From positions 124,001-188,000 of the IMG/VR virus record IMGVR_UViG_3300030041_000009: a stretch of DNA of 64,000 nucleotides; one strand, written 5' to 3'. How positions within the stretch are numbered: the first letter of the stretch is position 1; every line of letters starts with the position of its first letter. The translations under genes and the position numbers were made by a program. Shown piece after piece: positions 2,781 to 60,138 of this stretch. Below the pieces are notes generated by a model, which worked only from the letters and a program-made list of their open reading frames with translations, ran no database searches and had not been told where the DNA came from.

Positions 2781-3680
2781 ATGGAATATTTTTTAAAATT
2801 GTCATTTAAAGATGCTGGATTTTTTGAAAAAGCAACTAATAATCAAAAACCTAGTATAAGTGTTCATCAAATAAGTAACATGCTGCATGTTTTAATGGGT
2901 GAACGTCCAAGTCCAACATATAGAGATACATTAATTAAACCTATATCAGATATATTTAATATAGCTAATTTAGCTTATATAAAAATAGATACAACAAGAT
3001 TTTTAAATAAATCTAGTGGTAAAATGTGTTATATGAATGAGTTTATACAAACAAATAAATTTGCTTATGATAGCTATAGAGATAAAAAAAGAAGTTTTAT
3101 TTATTGGGAAAATCTAGAATGTTATTTAACTACTGATCTATTTATAGAAATGATTAATTTATTTAATAATATATTAGGTTATGATGTTAAATCAAAACCT
3201 GCAATGTATATAATAAAAGAGATTATTACATATTATAGTAGTTCTAAATTAGTTATAGATATTAATAATGAAATAAAAAATAATAGCAAAATAAAATTTG
3301 CAAATTTCATTAAACAATATAATGATAATTCTGATTTTACAATTTTTTGTAAAAAATTAGTTAAAAATAATAAAACTCCAATTGCAAATCTTCTTATTGG
3401 TATTGTAAATCAATCAGCAATAACAATTGGTCAAAATCCAAAAACTACATTAACAAATATTAGAGGAATTGATAATATTACAAAAATTAGTGGTTCTATA
3501 ATAATTCCTTTAACATCAGAATATGTTGACAAAATTAAAAATTCAAAAGGTTGTGCAACGTTATTAGATGGAGGATTTGTTTGGATAGAAGATTTGATAA
3601 ATGAAGATGAAATGATTGAAAATGATTTAGATAGTTATATTAATATTAATAAATTAGAAGAATATGAGAATAAAAATTGA
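2781..3680 (+). CDS. cas5: Cas5, type I-F2 (Cas5fv)-like
   Basis: Between cas7 and cas6; MLHVLMGER and TKISGSIII..LLDGGFVWI resemble Cas5fv N- and C-terminal RRM elements; ~300 aa with central helical insert. Confidence 0.7.
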   Translation: MEYFLKLSFKDAGFFEKATNNQKPSISVHQISNMLHVLMGERPSPTYRDTLIKPISDIFNIANLAYIKIDTTRFLNKSSGKMCYMNEFIQTNKFAYDSYRDKKRSFIYWENLECYLTTDLFIEMINLFNNILGYDVKSKPAMYIIKEIITYYSSSKLVIDINNEIKNNSKIKFANFIKQYNDNSDFTIFCKKLVKNNKTPIANLLIGIVNQSAITIGQNPKTTLTNIRGIDNITKISGSIIIPLTSEYVDKIKNSKGCATLLDGGFVWIEDLINEDEMIENDLDSYININKLEEYENKN

Positions 3681-4368
3681 ATTTACAGAAAATAAAACAT
3701 TGGTACCGATTAAGAATCAATCATATATTAATTATTATATACACAAATGTCTTGGAGTTAATAATAAATATCATGATTCTAAAAATGATTACTCTATATC
3801 ATCTTTATATGGTGGAAACCTAACTGAAGATAAGTTACATTTATCATTTAAGAATGGAGGAATTATTGTAGTAACTTCAAAAAATGAAGAATTTTTGAAT
3901 GATTTAATAAGTGGAGTGATGTCTAATCAAGATTTAAATTGGGGAATGAAATTTAATAAAATTAATTTTATCTTTGAAAAATTTATAAATGGATGGAATC
4001 ATTTCGCAACATTATCTCCATTTATTATTAGAAAGCATATTAATAAAAAGAAATATACTTATTCAACTTTAAATGATTCTGATTTCGTATATATTGTAAA
4101 AAACCATATTATAAAAAAATTGAGTAAAATTTATAACGGTATTAATTTAAAAGATTTTGATGTTAAAATAATAAATCATCCTTCACATAAAGTAAAGAAA
4201 ATAATGGTTAAAAATGTCAAAAATGAAGCTAATCAATGTCACATTAGTATATTTTGTTCATCTGATGTGGCAGAAAAAATTTATAATTTAGGTATAGGAC
4301 AATCAACTGGTTCTGGATTTGGTACAATTTATAAAACAGAAAATAAAGATAAATATAAATTAGTATGA
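3664..4368 (+). CDS. cas6: CRISPR-associated endoribonuclease Cas6 (canonical, non-Cas6f)
   Basis: C-terminal Gly-rich loop GIGQSTGSGFG, YSISSL and TLSPFII motifs; abuts array leader. Confidence 0.92.
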   Translation: MRIKIEFTENKTLVPIKNQSYINYYIHKCLGVNNKYHDSKNDYSISSLYGGNLTEDKLHLSFKNGGIIVVTSKNEEFLNDLISGVMSNQDLNWGMKFNKINFIFEKFINGWNHFATLSPFIIRKHINKKKYTYSTLNDSDFVYIVKNHIIKKLSKIYNGINLKDFDVKIINHPSHKVKKIMVKNVKNEANQCHISIFCSSDVAEKIYNLGIGQSTGSGFGTIYKTENKDKYKLV

Positions 4369-4469
4369 TAAAAATGAATAAATATAATGATATACGTATA
4401 TTAATAACTCATTTTTATTTATTAATATATACTATAAATAACTCAATATCAATTAATTATAAATATCCT
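4369..4469 (+). promoter_or_regulatory. AT-rich CRISPR leader
   Basis: Between cas6 and the first perfect repeat; repeat variants accumulate at the far end; contains TAATATATAC (4423-4432), like other putative phage promoters. Confidence 0.7.
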
Positions 4470-6930
4470 GATATTATTTATATAAATCCGTAAGGGAGTC
4501 TCAACCAATGAATTGATGTCTATCCTGTTCTGCTAGATATTATTTATATAAATCCGTAAGGGAGTCTCAACTCTAGCTGTTCAATCTCTTTAAATAGATT
4601 TGATATTATTTATATAAATCCGTAAGGGAGTCTCAACATAGTGCAATTACTTATTCTAACATAACAGGATATTATTTATATAAATCCGTAAGGGAGTCTC
4701 AACAAATAAAATGATTGACTTTCAATTATATCAGATATTATTTATATAAATCCGTAAGGGAGTCTCAACATATGTTATATATATGTATTTAATTTGTCGA
4801 TATTATTTATATAAATCCGTAAGGGAGTCTCAACGAGCGTCAGTCAATGTTGAATTCGCTTTTGATATTATTTATATAAATCCGTAAGGGAGTCTCAACA
4901 CATATTGCTTATTTACATTAAATACGCTAGATATTATTTATATAAATCCGTAAGGGAGTCTCAACTATAGTCAATTAAGAAAAGAGTTAATCGGTGATAT
5001 TATTTATATAAATCCGTAAGGGAGTCTCAACACATATTGCTTATTAGAATCAAATACGCTAGATATTATTTATATAAATCCGTAAGGGAGTCTCAACATA
5101 TTTCTACAAATCATTCAAAGAAGAAATGATATTATTTATATAAATCCGTAAGGGAGTCTCAACAAGTGTAGCCAGAAAAAATGGGAAAAGTGCGATATTA
5201 TTTATATAAATCCGTAAGGGAGTCTCAACGAACCCTATTAATGACATTTTTAGTGCAATGATATTATTTATATAAATCCGTAAGGGAGTCTCAACAAAGC
5301 AGAGCAGGAAAAGAAGTGATTATATGATATTATTTATATAAATCCGTAAGGGAGTCTCAACAGTTGATGAAAAAAATAGGGAGGTTATAGGATATTATTT
5401 ATATAAATCCGTAAGGGAGTCTCAACAATGAATTAAAGGCAACCGAAGTTCTTGATGATATTATTTATATAAATCCGTAAGGGAGTCTCAACGAATTACT
5501 ACGTAAAACAAAAAGTGATTCAGATATTATTTATATAAATCCGTAAGGGAGTCTCAACTTATCATATTTAATAAATATAGTAATATAAGATATTATTTAT
5601 ATAAATCCGTAAGGGAGTCTCAACAAAGGAAGTGATATTATTTCAAATACAAAAGATATTATTTATATAAATCCGTAAGGGAGTCTCAACGAAGGTGGTG
5701 CCAGCACATCTATTAATAAGATATTATTTATATAAATCCGTAAGGGAGTCTTAACAAGGTATCAATTCTTTTTCTTAATTGGTAAGATATTATTTATATA
5801 AATCCGTAAGGGAGTCTCAACCCTGATTTTCTTGTAAAGATTTTCAAATAAGATATTATTTATATAAATCCGTAAGGGAGTCTCAACGGTGATTATACAG
5901 ATTTAGAATTAGAATTAGATATTATTTATATAAATCCGTAAGGGAGTCTCAACAGAGAAACAGTTTTAGTTTTAGGTACAACAGATATTATTTATATAAA
6001 TCCGTAAGGGAGTCTCAACATTGATTGATATTCAGTTATAAAATAATTTGATATTATTTATATAAATCCGTAAGGGAGTCTCAACGGTGTAACTCCAATT
6101 TTCACAGATGATTTTGATATTATTTATATAAATCCGTAAGGGAATCTCAACTTCTTACCAGTTGAATATTCAGAGTATTTAGATATTATTTATATAAATC
6201 CGTAAGGGAATCTCAACTATAGAAAAGGAGGGAAGACACTTGTTAAAGATATTATTTATATAAATCCGTAATGGAGTCTCAACAATGAATTACAACGGTG
6301 AATTCTGTATGCAGATATTATTTATATAAATCCGTAAAGGAGTCTTAACAGTTTATGATTTGCAGCATATTCAGATAATGATATTATTTATATAAATCCG
6401 TAAGGGAGTCTCAACAAATCAAATGATCATTTAGATGACAGTTTAGATATTATTTATATAAATCCGTAATGGAGTCTCAACATATATAGAAGAAAAACAA
6501 ATGACAAATATTGATATTATTTATATAAATCTGTAAGGGAGTCTCAACAATAAATCTCTTTCTATTGTTTCTATAGTTGATATTATTTATATAAATCCGT
6601 AAGGGAGTCTCAACTAAAGAAGAAAAAATAATTCTGAATGATAAGATATTATTTATATAAATCCGTAAGGGAATCTCAACTTCTCTTTCTATTTTTGAAA
6701 AAAATGATAAGATATTATTTATATAAATCCGTAAGGGAGTCTCAACATGATTTAGAATTTATTACATTAAGTGAAGATATTATTTATATAAATCCGTAAG
6801 GGAGTCTCAACGACGAACAAGGTCGCACAGAAGTCGAATTCGATATTATTTATATAAATCCGTAAGGGAATCTCAACAAAATAGTGACACTATTTAAATA
6901 TGTGTTTATTATATTTATATAAATCAGTAA
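4470..6930 (+). CRISPR. CRISPR array: 37 full-length 36-bp repeats (GATATTATTTATATAAATCCGTAAGGGAGTCTCAAC) plus a degenerate terminal repeat at ~6907-6930; 37 spacers of 29-31 nt
   Basis: Counted directly; ~66-bp period; point variants only from repeat 20 onward. Confidence 0.99.
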
Positions 6931-6996
6931 TTAAATTTATGATTTATATTATAAATAATTAAAAAATTATTTTTATTCACAATTAAAATAAAAAAT

Positions 6997-9294
6997 ATGA
7001 AATTAGAAGAAATTGTATCAAATAGTAGTGGAATATCATTAATAACTCATTCAAAAGCAGTTAAAAAAATAGGAATGATGTTATCAAAAAAGTTATCATT
7101 AAATGAAGACCTTGAAAAACAAATTTCAATAGCTTGTTTATTGCATGATTTAGGTAAATGTAATTTAGATTTTCAAAATTATATAAAATCAAAAAGTAAA
7201 ACAATTTCTTTTATTAATTCTCCAATATTTCATCATGAAATAAGTTGGGCATTTGTGTCATGTATTTTAAATAATGATGAATATAGATATTCTTTAGATT
7301 CAATATATTGGCATCATTCTAAACCAAAAATAAATTATATAAGTAATGATAATATATCATTAATTTTAAGTGATATGTGTGATGATGATAAAAAAAATAT
7401 TTTATCAATGTATAATTTTTTAATGAATGAAAATATATTATTTGAAGATATAAATTTTGAAAAATCTATCAATACTCCATTATATTATTTAAATGAACCA
7501 AATAGTTTAACAAATTCTAAAAATTCATTAGTAAGATCTTGTGTTATAACTGCTGATAGACTTGTATCAGCATCAGATCAAGAAAAAATATTGTATGATG
7601 ATGATTATTGTGAAGAATTAATAAACAATTTATCATATAAAGATACTAAAGTATATAGCAAACCTATTAATTATGATTCTATTCGTTTTGATTCTCAAGT
7701 TGATTACGCAAATCAATCATTAAATAATCGAACTACAATAATGAAAGCCCCAGCCGGTTTTGGTAAAACATTATTGGGGTTATTATGGTCATTAAAATCT
7801 AATAAAAAATTAATATGGGTATGCCCTAGAAATATTATTGCTGAAAATGTATATAATTCTGTTTTACAAGAATTAAAAAATATATCAGTTGAATTATCAG
7901 TTGAGTTATATTTAACAGGTAATAGACAGAAAACAAATAATGAAAACACTAAAGAATTTACATCTGATATTATAATAACTAATATAGATAATTATTTATC
8001 TCCTAATGTGAATAATTCTATTAGAAATAGATTATTTGTTATTAATTATTGTGATGTGATTTTTGATGAATATCATGAATTAATTAAAGATGATGCACTA
8101 TTTGCATGTTTTATTAATATCATGAAATCTAGACATATGTTAACAAATAGTCACACATTATTATTAAGTGCTACACAAACTATAATGGAATATTTATGGG
8201 ATGGAACAAATATAGATAAAAAAACTAAAATTTTACCAAATAAAAATTCTCATTATACATCTGCACATAATGGTAAATATTTGATTAATTATATTGATGA
8301 TATTGATACAATAACTAATGAAAAAGATTCAGTTGTTATTATGAATTCTATTTCAAATTCTCAAAGATTATATTGTTATAAAAAAGGCGATATTTTAATA
8401 CATAGTAGATATATAGATTCTGATAAAGAAAAAATAATGAATAAAATTATTCATTTATATGGCAAAGAAAATAAAAATATTTTGAATAAAGATAGTATTA
8501 TATCAGCACCTATTTTACAAGCATCTATGGATATATCATTTTTAAATTTAACAGATAGTGTGATGTCTCCAGAAACTACTTTACAAAGAATAGGTCGATG
8601 TGATAGGTGGGGACATTTTTATTATAAAAAAAATAAAACTCCAAAAATAAATTTATTTTTTAATGAAAATAAAAGTGAATTTAGAAACTCAGAAAACACT
8701 AGTATATCAAATCAATATGATTTAGAATTAAATAAATTATGGATTTCATTTATTAAAAAACATATTATTAACGGAAATTTATATTCAATAAATGAATTAT
8801 ATGAATATTATAATATGTTTAATAATGAAAATAATGAAAATTTAAAAAAGTTTATCACATCTAAACTAAAAACAAGTTTATTAAATTTATGTAAAATTGA
8901 ACCGTATAAGATGATGGAGAAATCTAAAAACAATACAATTAAAAATAATAATACTAAATTAAGAAGTGGAGGAGATATATATTGTATATATAAATATGCA
9001 AAAAAAAGACAAATGACGGACTCATTTAGTGTAGATTTTAATCGAGATATTAAAAAATCTGAACCAATAACAGGTTTAGATAGTAAAATTAAGAGAATAA
9101 TAAAGAATATTATAAAAATTAAGGATGATAGATTTTTTTATAATAAATATTCGTTATTTAAAAATAATCAATATACTTTACCTATACTTAAAGATTATGC
9201 CAGGAAAAAAGAAACCCCATATATTGCATTTGATAAAGTTTATTGTGAAAAATTAGGATTAGTAAAAAATGATATTTACGATAATTTAATATAA
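6997..9294 (+). CDS. cas3: Cas3 HD nuclease-helicase (no N-terminal Cas2 fusion)
   Basis: HD motifs HS, LLHDLGK, HHE, WHH, AD; SF2 motifs APAGFGKT, DEYH, SAT, HSR, QRIGRCDR; follows array. Confidence 0.95.
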   Translation: MKLEEIVSNSSGISLITHSKAVKKIGMMLSKKLSLNEDLEKQISIACLLHDLGKCNLDFQNYIKSKSKTISFINSPIFHHEISWAFVSCILNNDEYRYSLDSIYWHHSKPKINYISNDNISLILSDMCDDDKKNILSMYNFLMNENILFEDINFEKSINTPLYYLNEPNSLTNSKNSLVRSCVITADRLVSASDQEKILYDDDYCEELINNLSYKDTKVYSKPINYDSIRFDSQVDYANQSLNNRTTIMKAPAGFGKTLLGLLWSLKSNKKLIWVCPRNIIAENVYNSVLQELKNISVELSVELYLTGNRQKTNNENTKEFTSDIIITNIDNYLSPNVNNSIRNRLFVINYCDVIFDEYHELIKDDALFACFINIMKSRHMLTNSHTLLLSATQTIMEYLWDGTNIDKKTKILPNKNSHYTSAHNGKYLINYIDDIDTITNEKDSVVIMNSISNSQRLYCYKKGDILIHSRYIDSDKEKIMNKIIHLYGKENKNILNKDSIISAPILQASMDISFLNLTDSVMSPETTLQRIGRCDRWGHFYYKKNKTPKINLFFNENKSEFRNSENTSISNQYDLELNKLWISFIKKHIINGNLYSINELYEYYNMFNNENNENLKKFITSKLKTSLLNLCKIEPYKMMEKSKNNTIKNNNTKLRSGGDIYCIYKYAKKRQMTDSFSVDFNRDIKKSEPITGLDSKIKRIIKNIIKIKDDRFFYNKYSLFKNNQYTLPILKDYARKKETPYIAFDKVYCEKLGLVKNDIYDNLI

Positions 9295-9386: not shown

Positions 9387-11339
9387 ATGGTAAATAATAA
9401 CATTATTAGTGTTAAAGCTAAAAGAAATTTAATTAATGGTCAACTTACTAAAAATAATAAACCATACGTAAGAAAATTTGATTTTAGTCGTTATAGCAAT
9501 GATCAATTAGTTGATGCTTTATATAGTAAGAAATGGAATACTAATCGAAAAAAAGCACTTATTGCAATTAATAAATTAATAGATATTAGAATTAAAAATG
9601 ATAAATGTACTAAATATGATATTGAAAATCTAAAAGATATTGTATATAATAAAAAACACCAATTAATAAAATCTGCTAATAGTAATAGTAAAACAACTAC
9701 CACCACCACAACTATTCCAGCAAATACTAATTTAGCTCATAGTATAAAATTTCGTATTAATAAATTGATTTCTGAAATATATCGTCTAACTGGCATCAAA
9801 TTAGAAAAATTAAATAGAACTGATAATATTAATGATAAATCACACGTATTTGATGATCAGATTTTTGCATCATTAAGTTGCATATATAATATGTTATCAT
9901 CAAAACTTAATTCAAAACATAGTAGGTATAATATGTTAACTGCAGAAACTCAAGCAGGTAAAACTGGTGTTGTACGTAATATAATATATTTATTAGAAAC
10001 TTATCAAGAATTAAGAGAATATCTAAATTTGAAATTTAGAAGTAGTGTATTAATAACTCCAATGTGTGATAATTCAAATAAAGAACAATTAAAAACTGAC
10101 ATATCTCATGGAGAGTGTCGGCAAGATGATCAAAAAATATTAAAGAGGAATGGTATTATGCATAATCCAGATTTAATTCGTTGGTCAAGAAAAAATAAAG
10201 TAGGTGATTTAAATAATTGTATTATATTTATTGATGAAGCTCATTTAGCATCAAATGTTGATAGTGCTATGAATAGTTATCTTCAAAAAAATGGTATAAA
10301 TTTAAATGGTTCAACTGATTTATCAAAAAAAAATATTTTCTTATTTTCTATATCAGCAACTCCGTATGAAGAACATGTTGGTAATATTTTATATAAAAGA
10401 AAGAACACTATTGAATTATCTCACGGACCTAATTACAAAGGCTTAGAATATTTTTTAAAAAATAATTTTTTAAGAGAATCATTTGATTTATCAACAACAG
10501 AAGGTGAAAAACATTTTATAAATGAAGCAGAAAGCTTTAATAATAAAATAGGATATTATATTGTTAGAATAAATAAAAATACAAATACAAATAATCTAAT
10601 ACCTGATGGATTTAAAACTTTGACATATTATGAGAAAGATAAAGAAGTTATTAATGATGTATTAAAAAATGCACCAGATGCTCCTACCATAATATTTATT
10701 AAGGAGAAAATGAAGCAATCATATCAATTAGAGAAAGAAAATATTGTAATGTTATTTGATAGAACTACAGTTAATGATTCTACATATAGAACAAGTTTTA
10801 TTGTTCAAAGTTTTGCAGGTAGATCATGTGGATATCATAATTATAATTTTATAATTTATACAGAAATAAAACACATCAAACTTCATCTTTCATATTTAAA
10901 AAATAAATATAATGTTCCTCCATGTAAACATGTAATTAAGAAAAATAAATTTAATTTTAAAAATGGTATAAAAGAACAAGCTTCATCATATAGTGATCAA
11001 AATGATTCATCACATACAAATGATTTTTCATTAAAAATTGTACATAATACACCGAATGAAGGTTATATAGAATTAAATAATAATATCATAACAATATATT
11101 TAGATAAAGATAAAAATTTAGTATTATCTAAAAAATCAAAAGTAGAAACAAATTTTCTTGCATCATATATTGAAGATTATGTTGTTATTTCTGATATTAA
11201 AACTCCTTGTGCAAATTTAATTGATGTAAAAAATGCATTAACATATTACTGTCAACTTATATCATCAAAAATAACAATAAATGATATTAAAACTAAAAAT
11301 GGTAAAAAATTTATTGATTTATTAGAATTTGAATTTTAA
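9387..11339 (+). CDS. SF2 helicase-like ATPase
   Basis: TQAGKT (Walker A), IDEAH (Walker B), SATP, QSFAGRSCGY (motif VI). Confidence 0.75.
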   Translation: MVNNNIISVKAKRNLINGQLTKNNKPYVRKFDFSRYSNDQLVDALYSKKWNTNRKKALIAINKLIDIRIKNDKCTKYDIENLKDIVYNKKHQLIKSANSNSKTTTTTTTIPANTNLAHSIKFRINKLISEIYRLTGIKLEKLNRTDNINDKSHVFDDQIFASLSCIYNMLSSKLNSKHSRYNMLTAETQAGKTGVVRNIIYLLETYQELREYLNLKFRSSVLITPMCDNSNKEQLKTDISHGECRQDDQKILKRNGIMHNPDLIRWSRKNKVGDLNNCIIFIDEAHLASNVDSAMNSYLQKNGINLNGSTDLSKKNIFLFSISATPYEEHVGNILYKRKNTIELSHGPNYKGLEYFLKNNFLRESFDLSTTEGEKHFINEAESFNNKIGYYIVRINKNTNTNNLIPDGFKTLTYYEKDKEVINDVLKNAPDAPTIIFIKEKMKQSYQLEKENIVMLFDRTTVNDSTYRTSFIVQSFAGRSCGYHNYNFIIYTEIKHIKLHLSYLKNKYNVPPCKHVIKKNKFNFKNGIKEQASSYSDQNDSSHTNDFSLKIVHNTPNEGYIELNNNIITIYLDKDKNLVLSKKSKVETNFLASYIEDYVVISDIKTPCANLIDVKNALTYYCQLISSKITINDIKTKNGKKFIDLLEFEF

Positions 11340-21043: not shown

Positions 21044-21129
21044 TGCCTTGTGATGGAATTGGCTAAACATTTCAGTCTTTGAAACTGATGCTCATTGTGA
21101 GCTTGTGGGTTCGAACCCCACCAAGGCGA
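21044..21129 (+). tRNA. tRNA with TTG (Gln) anticodon on a class II long-variable-arm body
   Basis: Acceptor TGCCTTG/CAAGGCG, anticodon arm TCAGT-CTTTGAA-ACTGA, variable stem GCTCA/TGAGC, T-arm GTGGG-TTCGAAC-CCCAC; CCA not encoded. Confidence 0.85.
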
Positions 21130-21135
21130 CAATAT

Positions 21136-21206
21136 TCTTTCTTGATGTAATGATAGCATATCATTTTCTGACAATGAATGACTAAGTTCAAATCTTAGAG
21201 AAAGAA
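21136..21206 (+). tRNA. tRNA-Gln(CTG), AT-rich
   Basis: Acceptor TCTTTCT/AGAAAGA, anticodon arm TCATT-TTCTGAC-AATGA, T-arm CTAAG-TTCAAAT-CTTAG; D-loop has GA instead of GG. Confidence 0.75.
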
Positions 21207-21207
21207 C

Positions 21208-33714: not shown

Positions 33715-34689
33715 TTATTCTTCTGATGAATCAATATCAAAAAAATTGTTAGCGTCATCATCGTCATCTCCAAATGCTTCATCATTAATTTTACTAGATT
33801 TTGATTCTTTTGTTGATACATTATCATTAGATGAATTTTCAGCTTCTTTTTTAGCAAAAGATGTTTCATTACCTGAAATAATATCAAGTATTTGAGTTAC
33901 TTTAAATCTATCTTCAGAAGTCCATTCTTTTGGTTGATGATCTTCAAGATCAATTGTACGTTCCTTTAAAAACGTCATTACTTTTTCTTTAACTTTAGGA
34001 TTAGTAATTTTATTTTTTCCTGTTTTTTCATCAACTTCAATTGGAACTTTAACCAAACCTTTTGGAGTCATAATTTTAATAGGAGATACTTCTAAAAAAG
34101 TACTAGAATCATAATTAGGAAATTCTCCTAATTGCTTCATAACCAATTTGAAGTCTTTACCATTTGCCAAATCAAAAACATTACAAGCATCTGATGATAT
34201 ACCATCTTTTTGATCTTTAATTTTTTCTTTGATTTTGTAACCATAAGGATAAATTAAAATTTTGCCTTCTAAATCACGATTTTGTTCATCTTCAATTACT
34301 AAAATATAAGAATAATATTTAGTACTTCTACTAATCAAATCTGCTTTTTCAACATCTGATGCGTTTTTTGAGTTCTTCAACTTCCAGTACATAGTACAAA
34401 TATCACATTTATCTGTGAAATTTTTCATACAATCATAGTAACCTTGAAGTTCTGGATGATTTTTAAAATCAACATAATGCTGATGTTTTTCAATTGCTGA
34501 TAATGATACTTTACCATCTTTTGTAAGATTTGGTAAAAATCTAATAGTAGAAACATAACCTTTCTTTTTGTCTGTAATTTTAGGACGATAAATACCATCT
34601 AAACTACCACCTTTTTTTTCTAGAAAATCTAGAGTTTCGCTTTGTGCGTCAATTGCGTCGAATAAATCGACATTTTCAAATTCTTTCAT
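33715..34689 (-). CDS. Single-stranded DNA-binding protein, T4 gp32-like
   Basis: IRFLP, H/C-x-C-x2-C Zn ligands, FDLANGKDF, NYDSSTF, acidic C-terminal tail. Confidence 0.85.
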   Translation of the reverse strand: MKEFENVDLFDAIDAQSETLDFLEKKGGSLDGIYRPKITDKKKGYVSTIRFLPNLTKDGKVSLSAIEKHQHYVDFKNHPELQGYYDCMKNFTDKCDICTMYWKLKNSKNASDVEKADLISRSTKYYSYILVIEDEQNRDLEGKILIYPYGYKIKEKIKDQKDGISSDACNVFDLANGKDFKLVMKQLGEFPNYDSSTFLEVSPIKIMTPKGLVKVPIEVDEKTGKNKITNPKVKEKVMTFLKERTIDLEDHQPKEWTSEDRFKVTQILDIISGNETSFAKKEAENSSNDNVSTKESKSSKINDEAFGDDDDDANNFFDIDSSEE

Positions 34690-59122: not shown

Positions 59123-59266
59123 ATGAAAGTTCAAAAAACATTTACAATAGAAAAAGAAATATCAAAAGAATTTGATAAGATTTCAAAAGAGAAATCAATT
59201 AATAAATCATTATTCATAGAAAATGCTATGAAAGATTTTATTGAAAAAATAATAAATCAAAAATGA
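59123..59266 (+). CDS. Ribbon-helix-helix DNA-binding protein
   Basis: KTFTIE beta-strand, NKSLFIENAMKDF helix. Confidence 0.65.
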   Translation: MKVQKTFTIEKEISKEFDKISKEKSINKSLFIENAMKDFIEKIINQK

Positions 59267-60138
59267 TTATTGGTGTATATAAAATAACAAATTTAATAAA
59301 TAATAAATGTTATGTTGGATCATCAATAAATGTTAAAGGAAGATTTACTCAACATAAGAATCAATTAAAAAAGAATAAACATCATTCTATTAAATTACAA
59401 AGAGCTTATGATAAATATGGTATTGAAAATTTTACATATACAATTTTAGAAGAATGTAGTATTAATGAAATTTTAATTAGAGAACAATATTATATTGATT
59501 TTTTTGATTGCTGTAAAAATGGATATAATATTTTACCTAATGCTGGACATAATTTAGGAATGAAACATAGTGACAAAACAAAAGATATATTAAGGCAAAA
59601 AAGTATTGGAAACAAAAGTCACTTTGGTATAAAACAAAGTGAAGAAACAAAAAAAATAATATCAGAAAAATTAAAAGGAATAAATATTTCAGATGAAACT
59701 AAATTAAAAATGAGTAAATCACAAAAAGGTAGAATAACAAGTGATGAAACTAAATTAAAATTAAGTATATTAAATAAAGGTAAAAAAATGAGTGATGAAG
59801 CTAAATTAAAAATAAGCATTTCAAAAAAAGGTAAACAGCAAAGTAAAGAAACTATTGAAAAAAGGGTAAAAAAGAATACTGGTCAAAAAAGAACAGATGA
59901 AGTTAAATTGAAAATGAGTAAAGCTATGATTGGTGTAAAAAAAAGACCTATGACTGAAGAATATAAATTATTAAGATCTAAAAAAGTTGCTCAAATATCA
60001 GAAAGTGGAGAAATAATTAAAGAATTTAATAGTGTAAAAAATTGTGCGTCGTATTTTAATACTAAAACTAATAGAATATGGGAAGTATTATCAGGTAACA
60101 AAAAATCTTATAAAAATAATTATTTCAAATATTTATAA
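59263..60138 (+). CDS. GIY-YIG homing endonuclease with NUMOD3 repeats
   Basis: GVYKITN..CYVGSS..R; repeated SDETKLKMS; C-terminal NUMOD1-like HTH. Confidence 0.92.
   Translation: MIIGVYKITNLINNKCYVGSSINVKGRFTQHKNQLKKNKHHSIKLQRAYDKYGIENFTYTILEECSINEILIREQYYIDFFDCCKNGYNILPNAGHNLGMKHSDKTKDILRQKSIGNKSHFGIKQSEETKKIISEKLKGINISDETKLKMSKSQKGRITSDETKLKLSILNKGKKMSDEAKLKISISKKGKQQSKETIEKRVKKNTGQKRTDEVKLKMSKAMIGVKKRPMTEEYKLLRSKKVAQISESGEIIKEFNSVKNCASYFNTKTNRIWEVLSGNKKSYKNNYFKYL

Follow-up and report, generated by a model that had tools for sequence, protein, structure and literature searches.

A long phage CRISPR array beside a predicted type I-Fv-like interference module, possibly filled by a host type II integrase

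How the arrays of phage CRISPR (short palindromic repeats that are clustered and regularly interspaced) systems without adaptation genes are filled with new spacers is an open question. We analysed a stretch of 64,000 nucleotides (positions 124,001 to 188,000 of IMG/VR virus record IMGVR_UViG_3300030041_000009; hereafter the window), in which a long CRISPR array lies among cas (CRISPR-associated) genes without cas1 or cas2. An earlier note on the window had proposed that this array may be filled in trans by a type II adaptation complex of the host while serving a class 1 effector. The class 1 effector and the absence of adaptation genes were borne out by our analysis, and the best-supported reading of the array is that a host type II integrase probably fills it in trans, with the comparative support lying at the level of the phage family. 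Taken as a whole, the proposal that the array stores the guides of a minimal type I-Fv-like module and is filled in this way seems to us about evenly balanced between right and wrong. The family of phages to which the array belongs gives a concrete and testable answer to the question.

The array, the interference module and the adaptation genes

Parsing of the repeats and spacers gave 37 distinct spacers, of which 30 are 30 nt long, six are 29 nt and one is 31 nt, as the earlier note had described (37 non-identical spacers of 29-31 nt). The array has a period of 66 nt, and the repeat-to-repeat spacing is 65-67 nt. The general hallmarks of a CRISPR array, that is, regular identical repeats, unique spacers of similar length and cas genes alongside, were all present; a scan of positions 4300-7000 against Rfam, made without a search aimed at a tracrRNA anti-repeat, gave no match. 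The polarity of the array, with perfect repeats at the leader end and degeneration at the distal end, was also as described. Repeats 1-19 have no mutation, nine of the 18 later ones (20, 26-29, 31, 32, 34 and 37) have one or two substitutions, and the decay of the terminal repeat is concentrated in its leader-distal part. The oldest variant repeats retain the A at position 29 that is the consensus in the related phage repeats (see below), which fits growth of the array from the cas6-proximal leader end. The repeat can form a small hairpin, in which columns 18-20 pair with columns 26-28. A compensatory change was found in four of 13 repeats of the family (one compensatory pair), and such a hairpin suits processing of the + strand by Cas6. 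Table 1 summarizes the features of the locus.

Table 1. Features of the CRISPR locus (positions in the window)
Feature	Coordinates	Strand	Basis or remark
Cas7fv-like backbone subunit, 357 aa	1697..2770	+	NF040577, PADLOC Cas7fv, PF28157
Cas5fv-like subunit, 299 aa	2781..3680	+	Predicted structure, gene position
Cas6 endoribonuclease, 234 aa	3664..4368	+	PF01881, TIGR01877, PADLOC Cas6b
Leader, with T5 run at 4412-4416 (-58 to -54 from repeat 1)	4369..4469	+	Same in 8 assemblies
CRISPR array (37 repeats, each 36 nt; 36 spacers, each 29-31 nt)	4470..6877	+	Repeat/spacer parsing
Oldest spacer, 29 nt, followed by the degenerate terminal repeat (6907-6942)	6878..6942	+	23/36 identity to repeat
Cas3 nuclease-helicase, 765 aa; HD, DEAD/ResIII and Cas3 C-terminal domain, no Cas2 domain	6997..9294	+	Pfam, TIGR01596, PADLOC

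Note that spacers 7 (4900-4929) and 9 (5032-5061) are identical at their ends, over 14 nt and 10 nt, and differ only in a 6-nt core, as though one target site had been sampled in two variants. The mean G+C content of the spacers is 26%, against 22% for the phage.

The cas7fv-like, cas5fv-like and cas6 genes upstream of the array and the cas3 gene downstream of it are predicted to constitute a minimal type I-Fv-like interference module. The Cas7fv-like protein matched the NCBIfam model NF040577 (Cas7fv) with an E-value of 2e-19, yet with a score of 70 bits that is far below the equivalog cut-off of 200, and it matched the PADLOC Cas7fv profile with an E-value of 4e-13. The precomputed family PF28157 (Cas7fv-like) was assigned to 161 relatives of this protein. 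For the Cas5fv-like protein, no sequence-family match was obtained with the Pfam, NCBIfam and PADLOC profiles. The top structural match of its AlphaFold2 model (mean pLDDT, the confidence score of the model, 82.6) was chain 5o6u_F of the I-Fv Cascade (Z 8.0), followed by the Cas5 chains of types I-E, I-B, I-C and I-D (Z 5-6), and the position of the gene is constant across all relatives. Cas6 was identified with Pfam PF01881 (5e-12), TIGR01877 (6e-22, above the cut-off) and PADLOC Cas6b (6.5e-36). Cas3 matched the Pfam families HD, Cas3_HD, DEAD and Cas3-like_C_2, TIGR01596 (7e-17, above the cut-off) and PADLOC Cas3fv (6.5e-66), the last at profile positions 320-903 only, with the Cas2 part of the profile unmatched.

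The module resembles the type I-F2 (I-Fv) system of Shewanella putrefaciens CN-32 (PDB 5O6U) in its Cas7fv-like and Cas5fv-like proteins, the latter by fold, in the presence of Cas6 and Cas3, and in having no recognisable large or small subunit; Cas7fv and Cas3fv are the top profile matches. However, the Cas2-Cas3 fusion and the adjacent Cas1 of type I-F2 are absent in this phage, its Cas6 is of the PF01881/Cas6b kind and not of the Cas6f type (the Cas6 of the I-Fv-like relative L055 has 184 aa), and its array has 36-nt repeats and 30-nt spacers, whereas those of type I-F2 are 28 nt and about 32 nt.

No gene for spacer integration was found with this module. The earlier note had reported the absence of cas1 and cas2 in 64 kb; it had asked for a search of the remaining genome for cas1, cas2 and cas4, and had regarded phage-encoded cas1 or cas2 outside the window as evidence against its proposal. 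Pfam profile searches for Cas1, Cas2 and Cas4 found none in the whole source record of 214,510 bp (22% G+C), and Cas1 was likewise absent from five sibling records, which are up to 256 kb long. Among 18 related virus records, those with a completeness of at least 90% number seven, three of them with terminal repeats; they carry the same module, and no Cas1 was found in any of the seven. The 10-kb flanks of the family loci examined also contain neither cas1 nor cas2. The exception is the distant relative L055 (29% Cas7 identity), in which Cas1-Cas2 adjoins the module. The absence of the integrase is the rule in this phage family.

Phage CRISPR systems without adaptation genes are already known. 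Those of huge phages almost always lack Cas1, Cas2 and Cas4, and some of these phages have been suggested to use host Cas proteins (Al-Shayeb et al. 2020, PMC7162821; PMC12607003). The present system resembles them in its huge phage, its probable Bacteroidota host and its lack of Cas1, Cas2 and Cas4, whereas its array of 38 repeats exceeds the reported huge-phage median of about six (PMC7162821). A phage-encoded type I-F system with an array is found in Vibrio phage ICP1 (Seed et al. 2013, as cited in PMC7162821). Like ICP1, the present phage combines a type I-F-related interference module with an array. ICP1 acquires spacers by itself with its own Cas1 and Cas2-3, whereas none of those adaptation genes was seen in the present phage.

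Likeness of the family's arrays to type II arrays of Bacteroidota

The loci of the Cas7 relatives that we examined lie in huge-phage-like contexts, with the same four genes and the array recurring. In the relatives with 33-53% Cas7 identity, the period of the array is 66 nt in all cases, with a 36-nt repeat and a 30-nt spacer wherever the repeat could be delimited, and nearly all of the delimited repeats terminate in AATCACAAC. In the relatives L055, L056 and L058, the repeat length is 28 nt and the spacers measure 32-34 nt. The spacer sets are wholly different among the family members, each on its own repeat variant. Because each integration copies the resident repeat to make the new repeat, the arrays of the family must have been built in place. 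The Cas7 family has no match among 50,697 GenBank phage records, a 735-kb metagenomic phage record included. A related phage of 597 kb (G013, with loci L046 and L063; 98% complete) has several separate arrays of family repeats (C1:~565000-567000 and ~595600-596540), one of them near the record end.

The host of the phage is probably a member of Bacteroidota, because Shine-Dalgarno-like motifs are nearly absent from the whole record (before two of 234 open reading frames (ORFs), against a background of 6.8%, with A-rich upstream regions), and because the matches of the Cas7 family in species genomes were only two contigs, both in metagenome-assembled genomes (MAGs) of Bacteroidota. One candidate partner, the Cas1 of the MAG holding a related contig, was rejected, since the array beside it is unrelated, with repeats of 37 nt and spacers of 36 nt.

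We searched 401 Bacteroidota genomes for the 9-mer AATCACAAC occurring twice at array spacing, using the reversed pattern as a control. The search found three chromosomal arrays (G384, G134 and G366), and the control found none. All three arrays have 36-nt repeats and 30-nt spacers, and all are directly downstream of Cas9 (with RuvC_III and HNH domains), a protein of about 210 aa, Cas1 and a Cas2-like ORF. The degenerate repeat is cas-distal in the two complete bacterial arrays, and the terminal repeats decay as in the phage array. When read from the leader, the phage and bacterial repeats share their orientation, with the leader adjoining the repeat end opposite GTTG, as in the published orientation rule (PMC8092290). 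When the 9-mer fixed by the search is left aside, two bacterial repeats agree with their best-matching phage repeat at 15 of 27 bases, a level reached by 27-37 of 2000 shuffles. A run of at least four T at -61 to -51 of the first repeat was found in nine of 13 family leaders, including that of the window (0 of 5000 shuffles), and also in two of the three Bacteroidota type II leaders (20 of 5000 shuffles). The link to type II, for which the earlier note had relied on spacer length, therefore now also includes the repeat end, the polarity and the leader T-run, all at the level of the family.

The array of this phage itself shares with the type II loci the 36-nt repeat, the 30-nt spacers and the leader opposite the GTTG end. 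The loci differ in Cas9, of which the RuvC_III domain was found neither in the record of the window nor in two sibling records and the record of the closest relative, by a search that recovers Cas9 in positive controls. In the phage record, no homologue was found of either the Cas1 or the ~210-aa protein that the bacterial loci encode. The ~210-aa proteins encoded between cas9 and cas1 (L092:2738-3406, L094:2276-2908 and L095:17390-18001) are 40-47% identical to one another and belong to no Pfam family; they may be accessory or adaptation factors of type II systems that have yet to be characterised.

The array design, the repeat end and the leader T-run of the phage family recall the single proven instance of adaptation across CRISPR types in Bacteroidota. 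The type VI-B array of Flavobacterium columnare has 36-bp repeats and no cas1 or cas2, and it is filled in trans by the type II-C Cas1/2 (Hoikkala et al. 2021, PMC8092290). The VI-B and II-C arrays of F. columnare share a leader-distal GTTGT end and have similarly placed poly(T)/poly(A) tracts in their leaders (PMC8092290), and arrays of type VI-B generally combine 30-nt spacers with 36-nt repeats that have GUUG...CAAC ends (10.1101/092577). The phage system resembles that of F. columnare in having no recognised cas1 and cas2 of its own, in its 36-nt repeats and predicted transcription from the leader, in the repeat end that the family shares with type II and in the poly(T) tract. Unlike the F. 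columnare array, it is phage-borne and is combined with a class 1 module predicted to target DNA.

The type II-like design of the arrays (36-nt repeats with 30-nt spacers, repeat end, polarity and T-run) suggests that a host type II Cas1-Cas2 most likely inserts the spacers. From the features described above, we infer the following scheme for the integrator, the processing, the interference and the targets. Transcription of the array would start from the leader, and Cas6 would cut the transcript at the small repeat hairpin. The resulting CRISPR RNAs, each with a 30-nt guide, together with Cas7 and Cas5, would recruit Cas3, and the target DNA would be destroyed; competing mobile elements would be the likeliest targets. 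During infection, the host type II Cas1-Cas2, possibly with Cas9, would insert new spacers, the leader-proximal repeat of the phage itself being copied at each insertion, and the interior of the repeat may have evolved to suit Cas6. Regarding transcription, positions 4959-5090 have an exact match in a 171-nt metatranscriptome contig from permafrost, which is a weak hint that the array is transcribed. More tentatively, and with somewhat more doubt than belief on our side, a clade of giant Bacteroidota phages may split the labour of CRISPR, with class 1 interference being viral and the arrays being written by the type II Cas1-Cas2 of the hosts by way of a chimeric repeat, whose length and ends, with the leader signal, would serve the integrase and whose inner hairpin would serve Cas6.

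The combination of an I-Fv-like effector, having a Cas6b-type Cas6 and no Cas2-Cas3 fusion, with an array of type II design is new, as are its recurrence across a clade of huge phages and the length of the array. No description of a type I-Fv-like effector paired with a type II-like array, or of this Cas7 family, was found in the literature searched, which did not cover the survey of virus-encoded CRISPR systems published in Cell in 2022. The module is compact: it consists of four genes, lacks a recognisable large or small subunit and would use a 30-nt guide. The family provides a natural set of leader-repeat variants for probing what a type II integrase needs in its substrate. To our knowledge, there is no earlier case of a class 1 effector that depends on a class 2 adaptation module, with the halves split between virus and host. 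The phage system would be the first of this kind if the proposal is true, and the immune memory of the phage would then depend on the hosts through which it had passed.

Evidence against the type II integrase and the other explanations

Several points weigh against filling by a host type II integrase. The assignment of the host to Bacteroidota is itself indirect, as described above. The likeness to type II rests on three arrays, which were found with a pattern that enforces the 9-mer and the period. The comparison of repeat ends and leaders that the earlier note had called for succeeded at the family level, with the match to Cas9-linked arrays and the T-run, and gave no match for the repeat of the phage itself: its own repeat ends in AGTCTCAAC, which is two of nine bases off the AATCACAAC consensus, and when the 401 Bacteroidota genomes were searched for three successive copies of AGTCTCAAC at the array period, a tandem repeat of 17 nt was the sole result and no CRISPR appeared. 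A 22-mer of the repeat of this phage had no match in 185,579 species genomes, and the leader-repeat junctions share no motif. The record is only about 30% complete according to CheckV (the longest known contig of the phage, 346,561 bp, reaches 48%), so that the absence of cas1 and cas2 covers part of the phage genome. Furthermore, no protospacer was found, and there is thus no protospacer adjacent motif that links the array to acquisition of the Cas9 type. The 37 spacers have no self-target in the 214-kb record of the phage; comparison of the array with GenBank phages gave chance-level matches only, and that with 20 related records and genomes gave repeat-to-repeat matches only. In IMG/VR, spacers 1, 7/9, 19 and 36 had no match outside the phage's own arrays, and the same held for 7/9 in JGI metagenome contigs; 164 spacers of relatives had no match in this phage or in any of the loci retrieved.

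A further point against the proposal comes from the array in other samples. Seven other IMG/VR contigs with the repeat, from seven other samples, have the same spacers, the same order, the same repeat mutations and the same leader. An array that is identical in eight assemblies from different peat samples shows no sign of current acquisition, and the array is static at present in the sampled peat population. The ongoing acquisition that the earlier note had read from the perfect repeats at the leader end and the degeneration of the distal ones was thus not seen in this phage.

Turnover was seen only in a sister lineage. The cas7-cas6 DNA of L049 and L051 is 99.86% identical, and their arrays have a backbone of old spacers in common. 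At the leader end, the array of L049 starts with spacers 1-3, that of L051 with spacers 26-28 and that of L057 with spacer 36 and then spacer 28, all on the shared old backbone. This pattern is the classic signature of acquisition at the leader end. The arrays of the sister lineage also show internal deletions or exchanges. The two related records that show turnover are 11-20% complete, which likewise counts against the proposal.

In view of these data, the array may instead be a fixed set of guides, with spacers that were laid down in an ancestor and have since been only inherited, trimmed and recombined, without present acquisition. The eight identical assemblies are what such an array would give; the arrays of the L012 group and the L030 group are also identical across several assemblies, and the internal differences between L049 and L051 show deletion and recombination at work. 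We nevertheless consider this explanation unlikely. The arrays of L049, L051 and L057 differ leader-proximally on their shared backbone, in L049 and L051 beside nearly identical cas genes, and the distinct spacer sets on their own repeat variants require many integrations in situ that postdate the 36-nt/30-nt design. The relative that encodes Cas1-Cas2 itself has another design (28-nt repeats and 32-34-nt spacers), and the peat samples may be one population.

It seems less likely still that the spacers are inserted by another integrase, either Cas1-Cas2 from a host system of a different type (such as I-B, III or V) or an unrecognised protein of the phage, with the likeness to type II being due to convergence or to descent from a captured array. 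Ends of the GTTG...CAAC kind are common to several CRISPR types, VI-B included (10.1101/092577), the rejected Cas1 of the Bacteroidota MAG stands beside an array of yet another design, and many genes of the window belong to no known family. However, all three of the arrays that share the repeat end are linked to Cas9, and two of them share the position-fixed T-run with the phage leaders, whereas the type I relative with its own integrase does not make the combination of 36-nt repeat and 30-nt spacer. The 650-aa neighbour of cas3 (see below) is shared with the closest relative only and is thus no accessory of the whole family.

Finally, cas1-cas2 of the phage's own, with or without cas4, in the genome part beyond the record seems the least likely of these explanations, since the incompleteness of the record and the Cas1-Cas2 beside the module of the distant relative L055, which would favour it, are set against the lack of Cas1 in all seven nearly complete related records, the lack of adaptation genes, which usually adjoin the leader, in the 10-kb flanks of the loci, and their almost general absence from huge-phage CRISPR systems (PMC7162821; PMC12607003).

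Distribution of the phage and neighbouring genes

The sequencing runs that hold the window are peat metagenomes, and partial matches were found in freshwater, soil, bioreactor and permafrost runs. Note that the data from these runs are assembled contigs, in which rare expanded arrays are invisible. In a freshwater run of 2025, cas6, the leader, repeat 1 and the start of cas3 (3549-4505 and 6994-7222) were found at at least 99% identity, with two single-nucleotide differences and none of the 37 spacers. This is suggestive of a freshwater strain that may carry a different array, although a gap in contig data is no proof of it.

The ORF directly after cas3 (9387-11339; 650 aa) has no family match; the ORF that occupies the corresponding position in L012, the closest relative, shares 70% identity with it. 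The 650-aa ORF was rejected as a component of the system, because it was otherwise found only in L012 and the rest of the family is without it.

In the phage record, ARAGORN predicted a tRNA with the anticodon CTA, which would read the stop codon TAG, outside the window (G000:C1:4949-5020), and two tRNA-Gln genes (TTG and CTG) within it (21044-21207). Recoding of TAG occurs in some megaphages, and the CTA tRNA hints that it is possible in part of this genome; the cas genes translate normally with table 11. Almost all genes in the rest of the window are without a known family. A PHROG scan of ten large ORFs gave two matches, to a gp32-like single-strand DNA-binding protein and to a GIY-YIG-type homing endonuclease (33715-34689 and 59263-60138).

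Directly upstream of cas7, positions 130-1631 contain six overlapping tandem ORFs of 83-90 aa without a family match. They are paralogues (33-56% identity) that share the C-terminal motif ...KQEERKIKLEKLYEE, and L012 has about 15 tandem small ORFs of like size at the same place.

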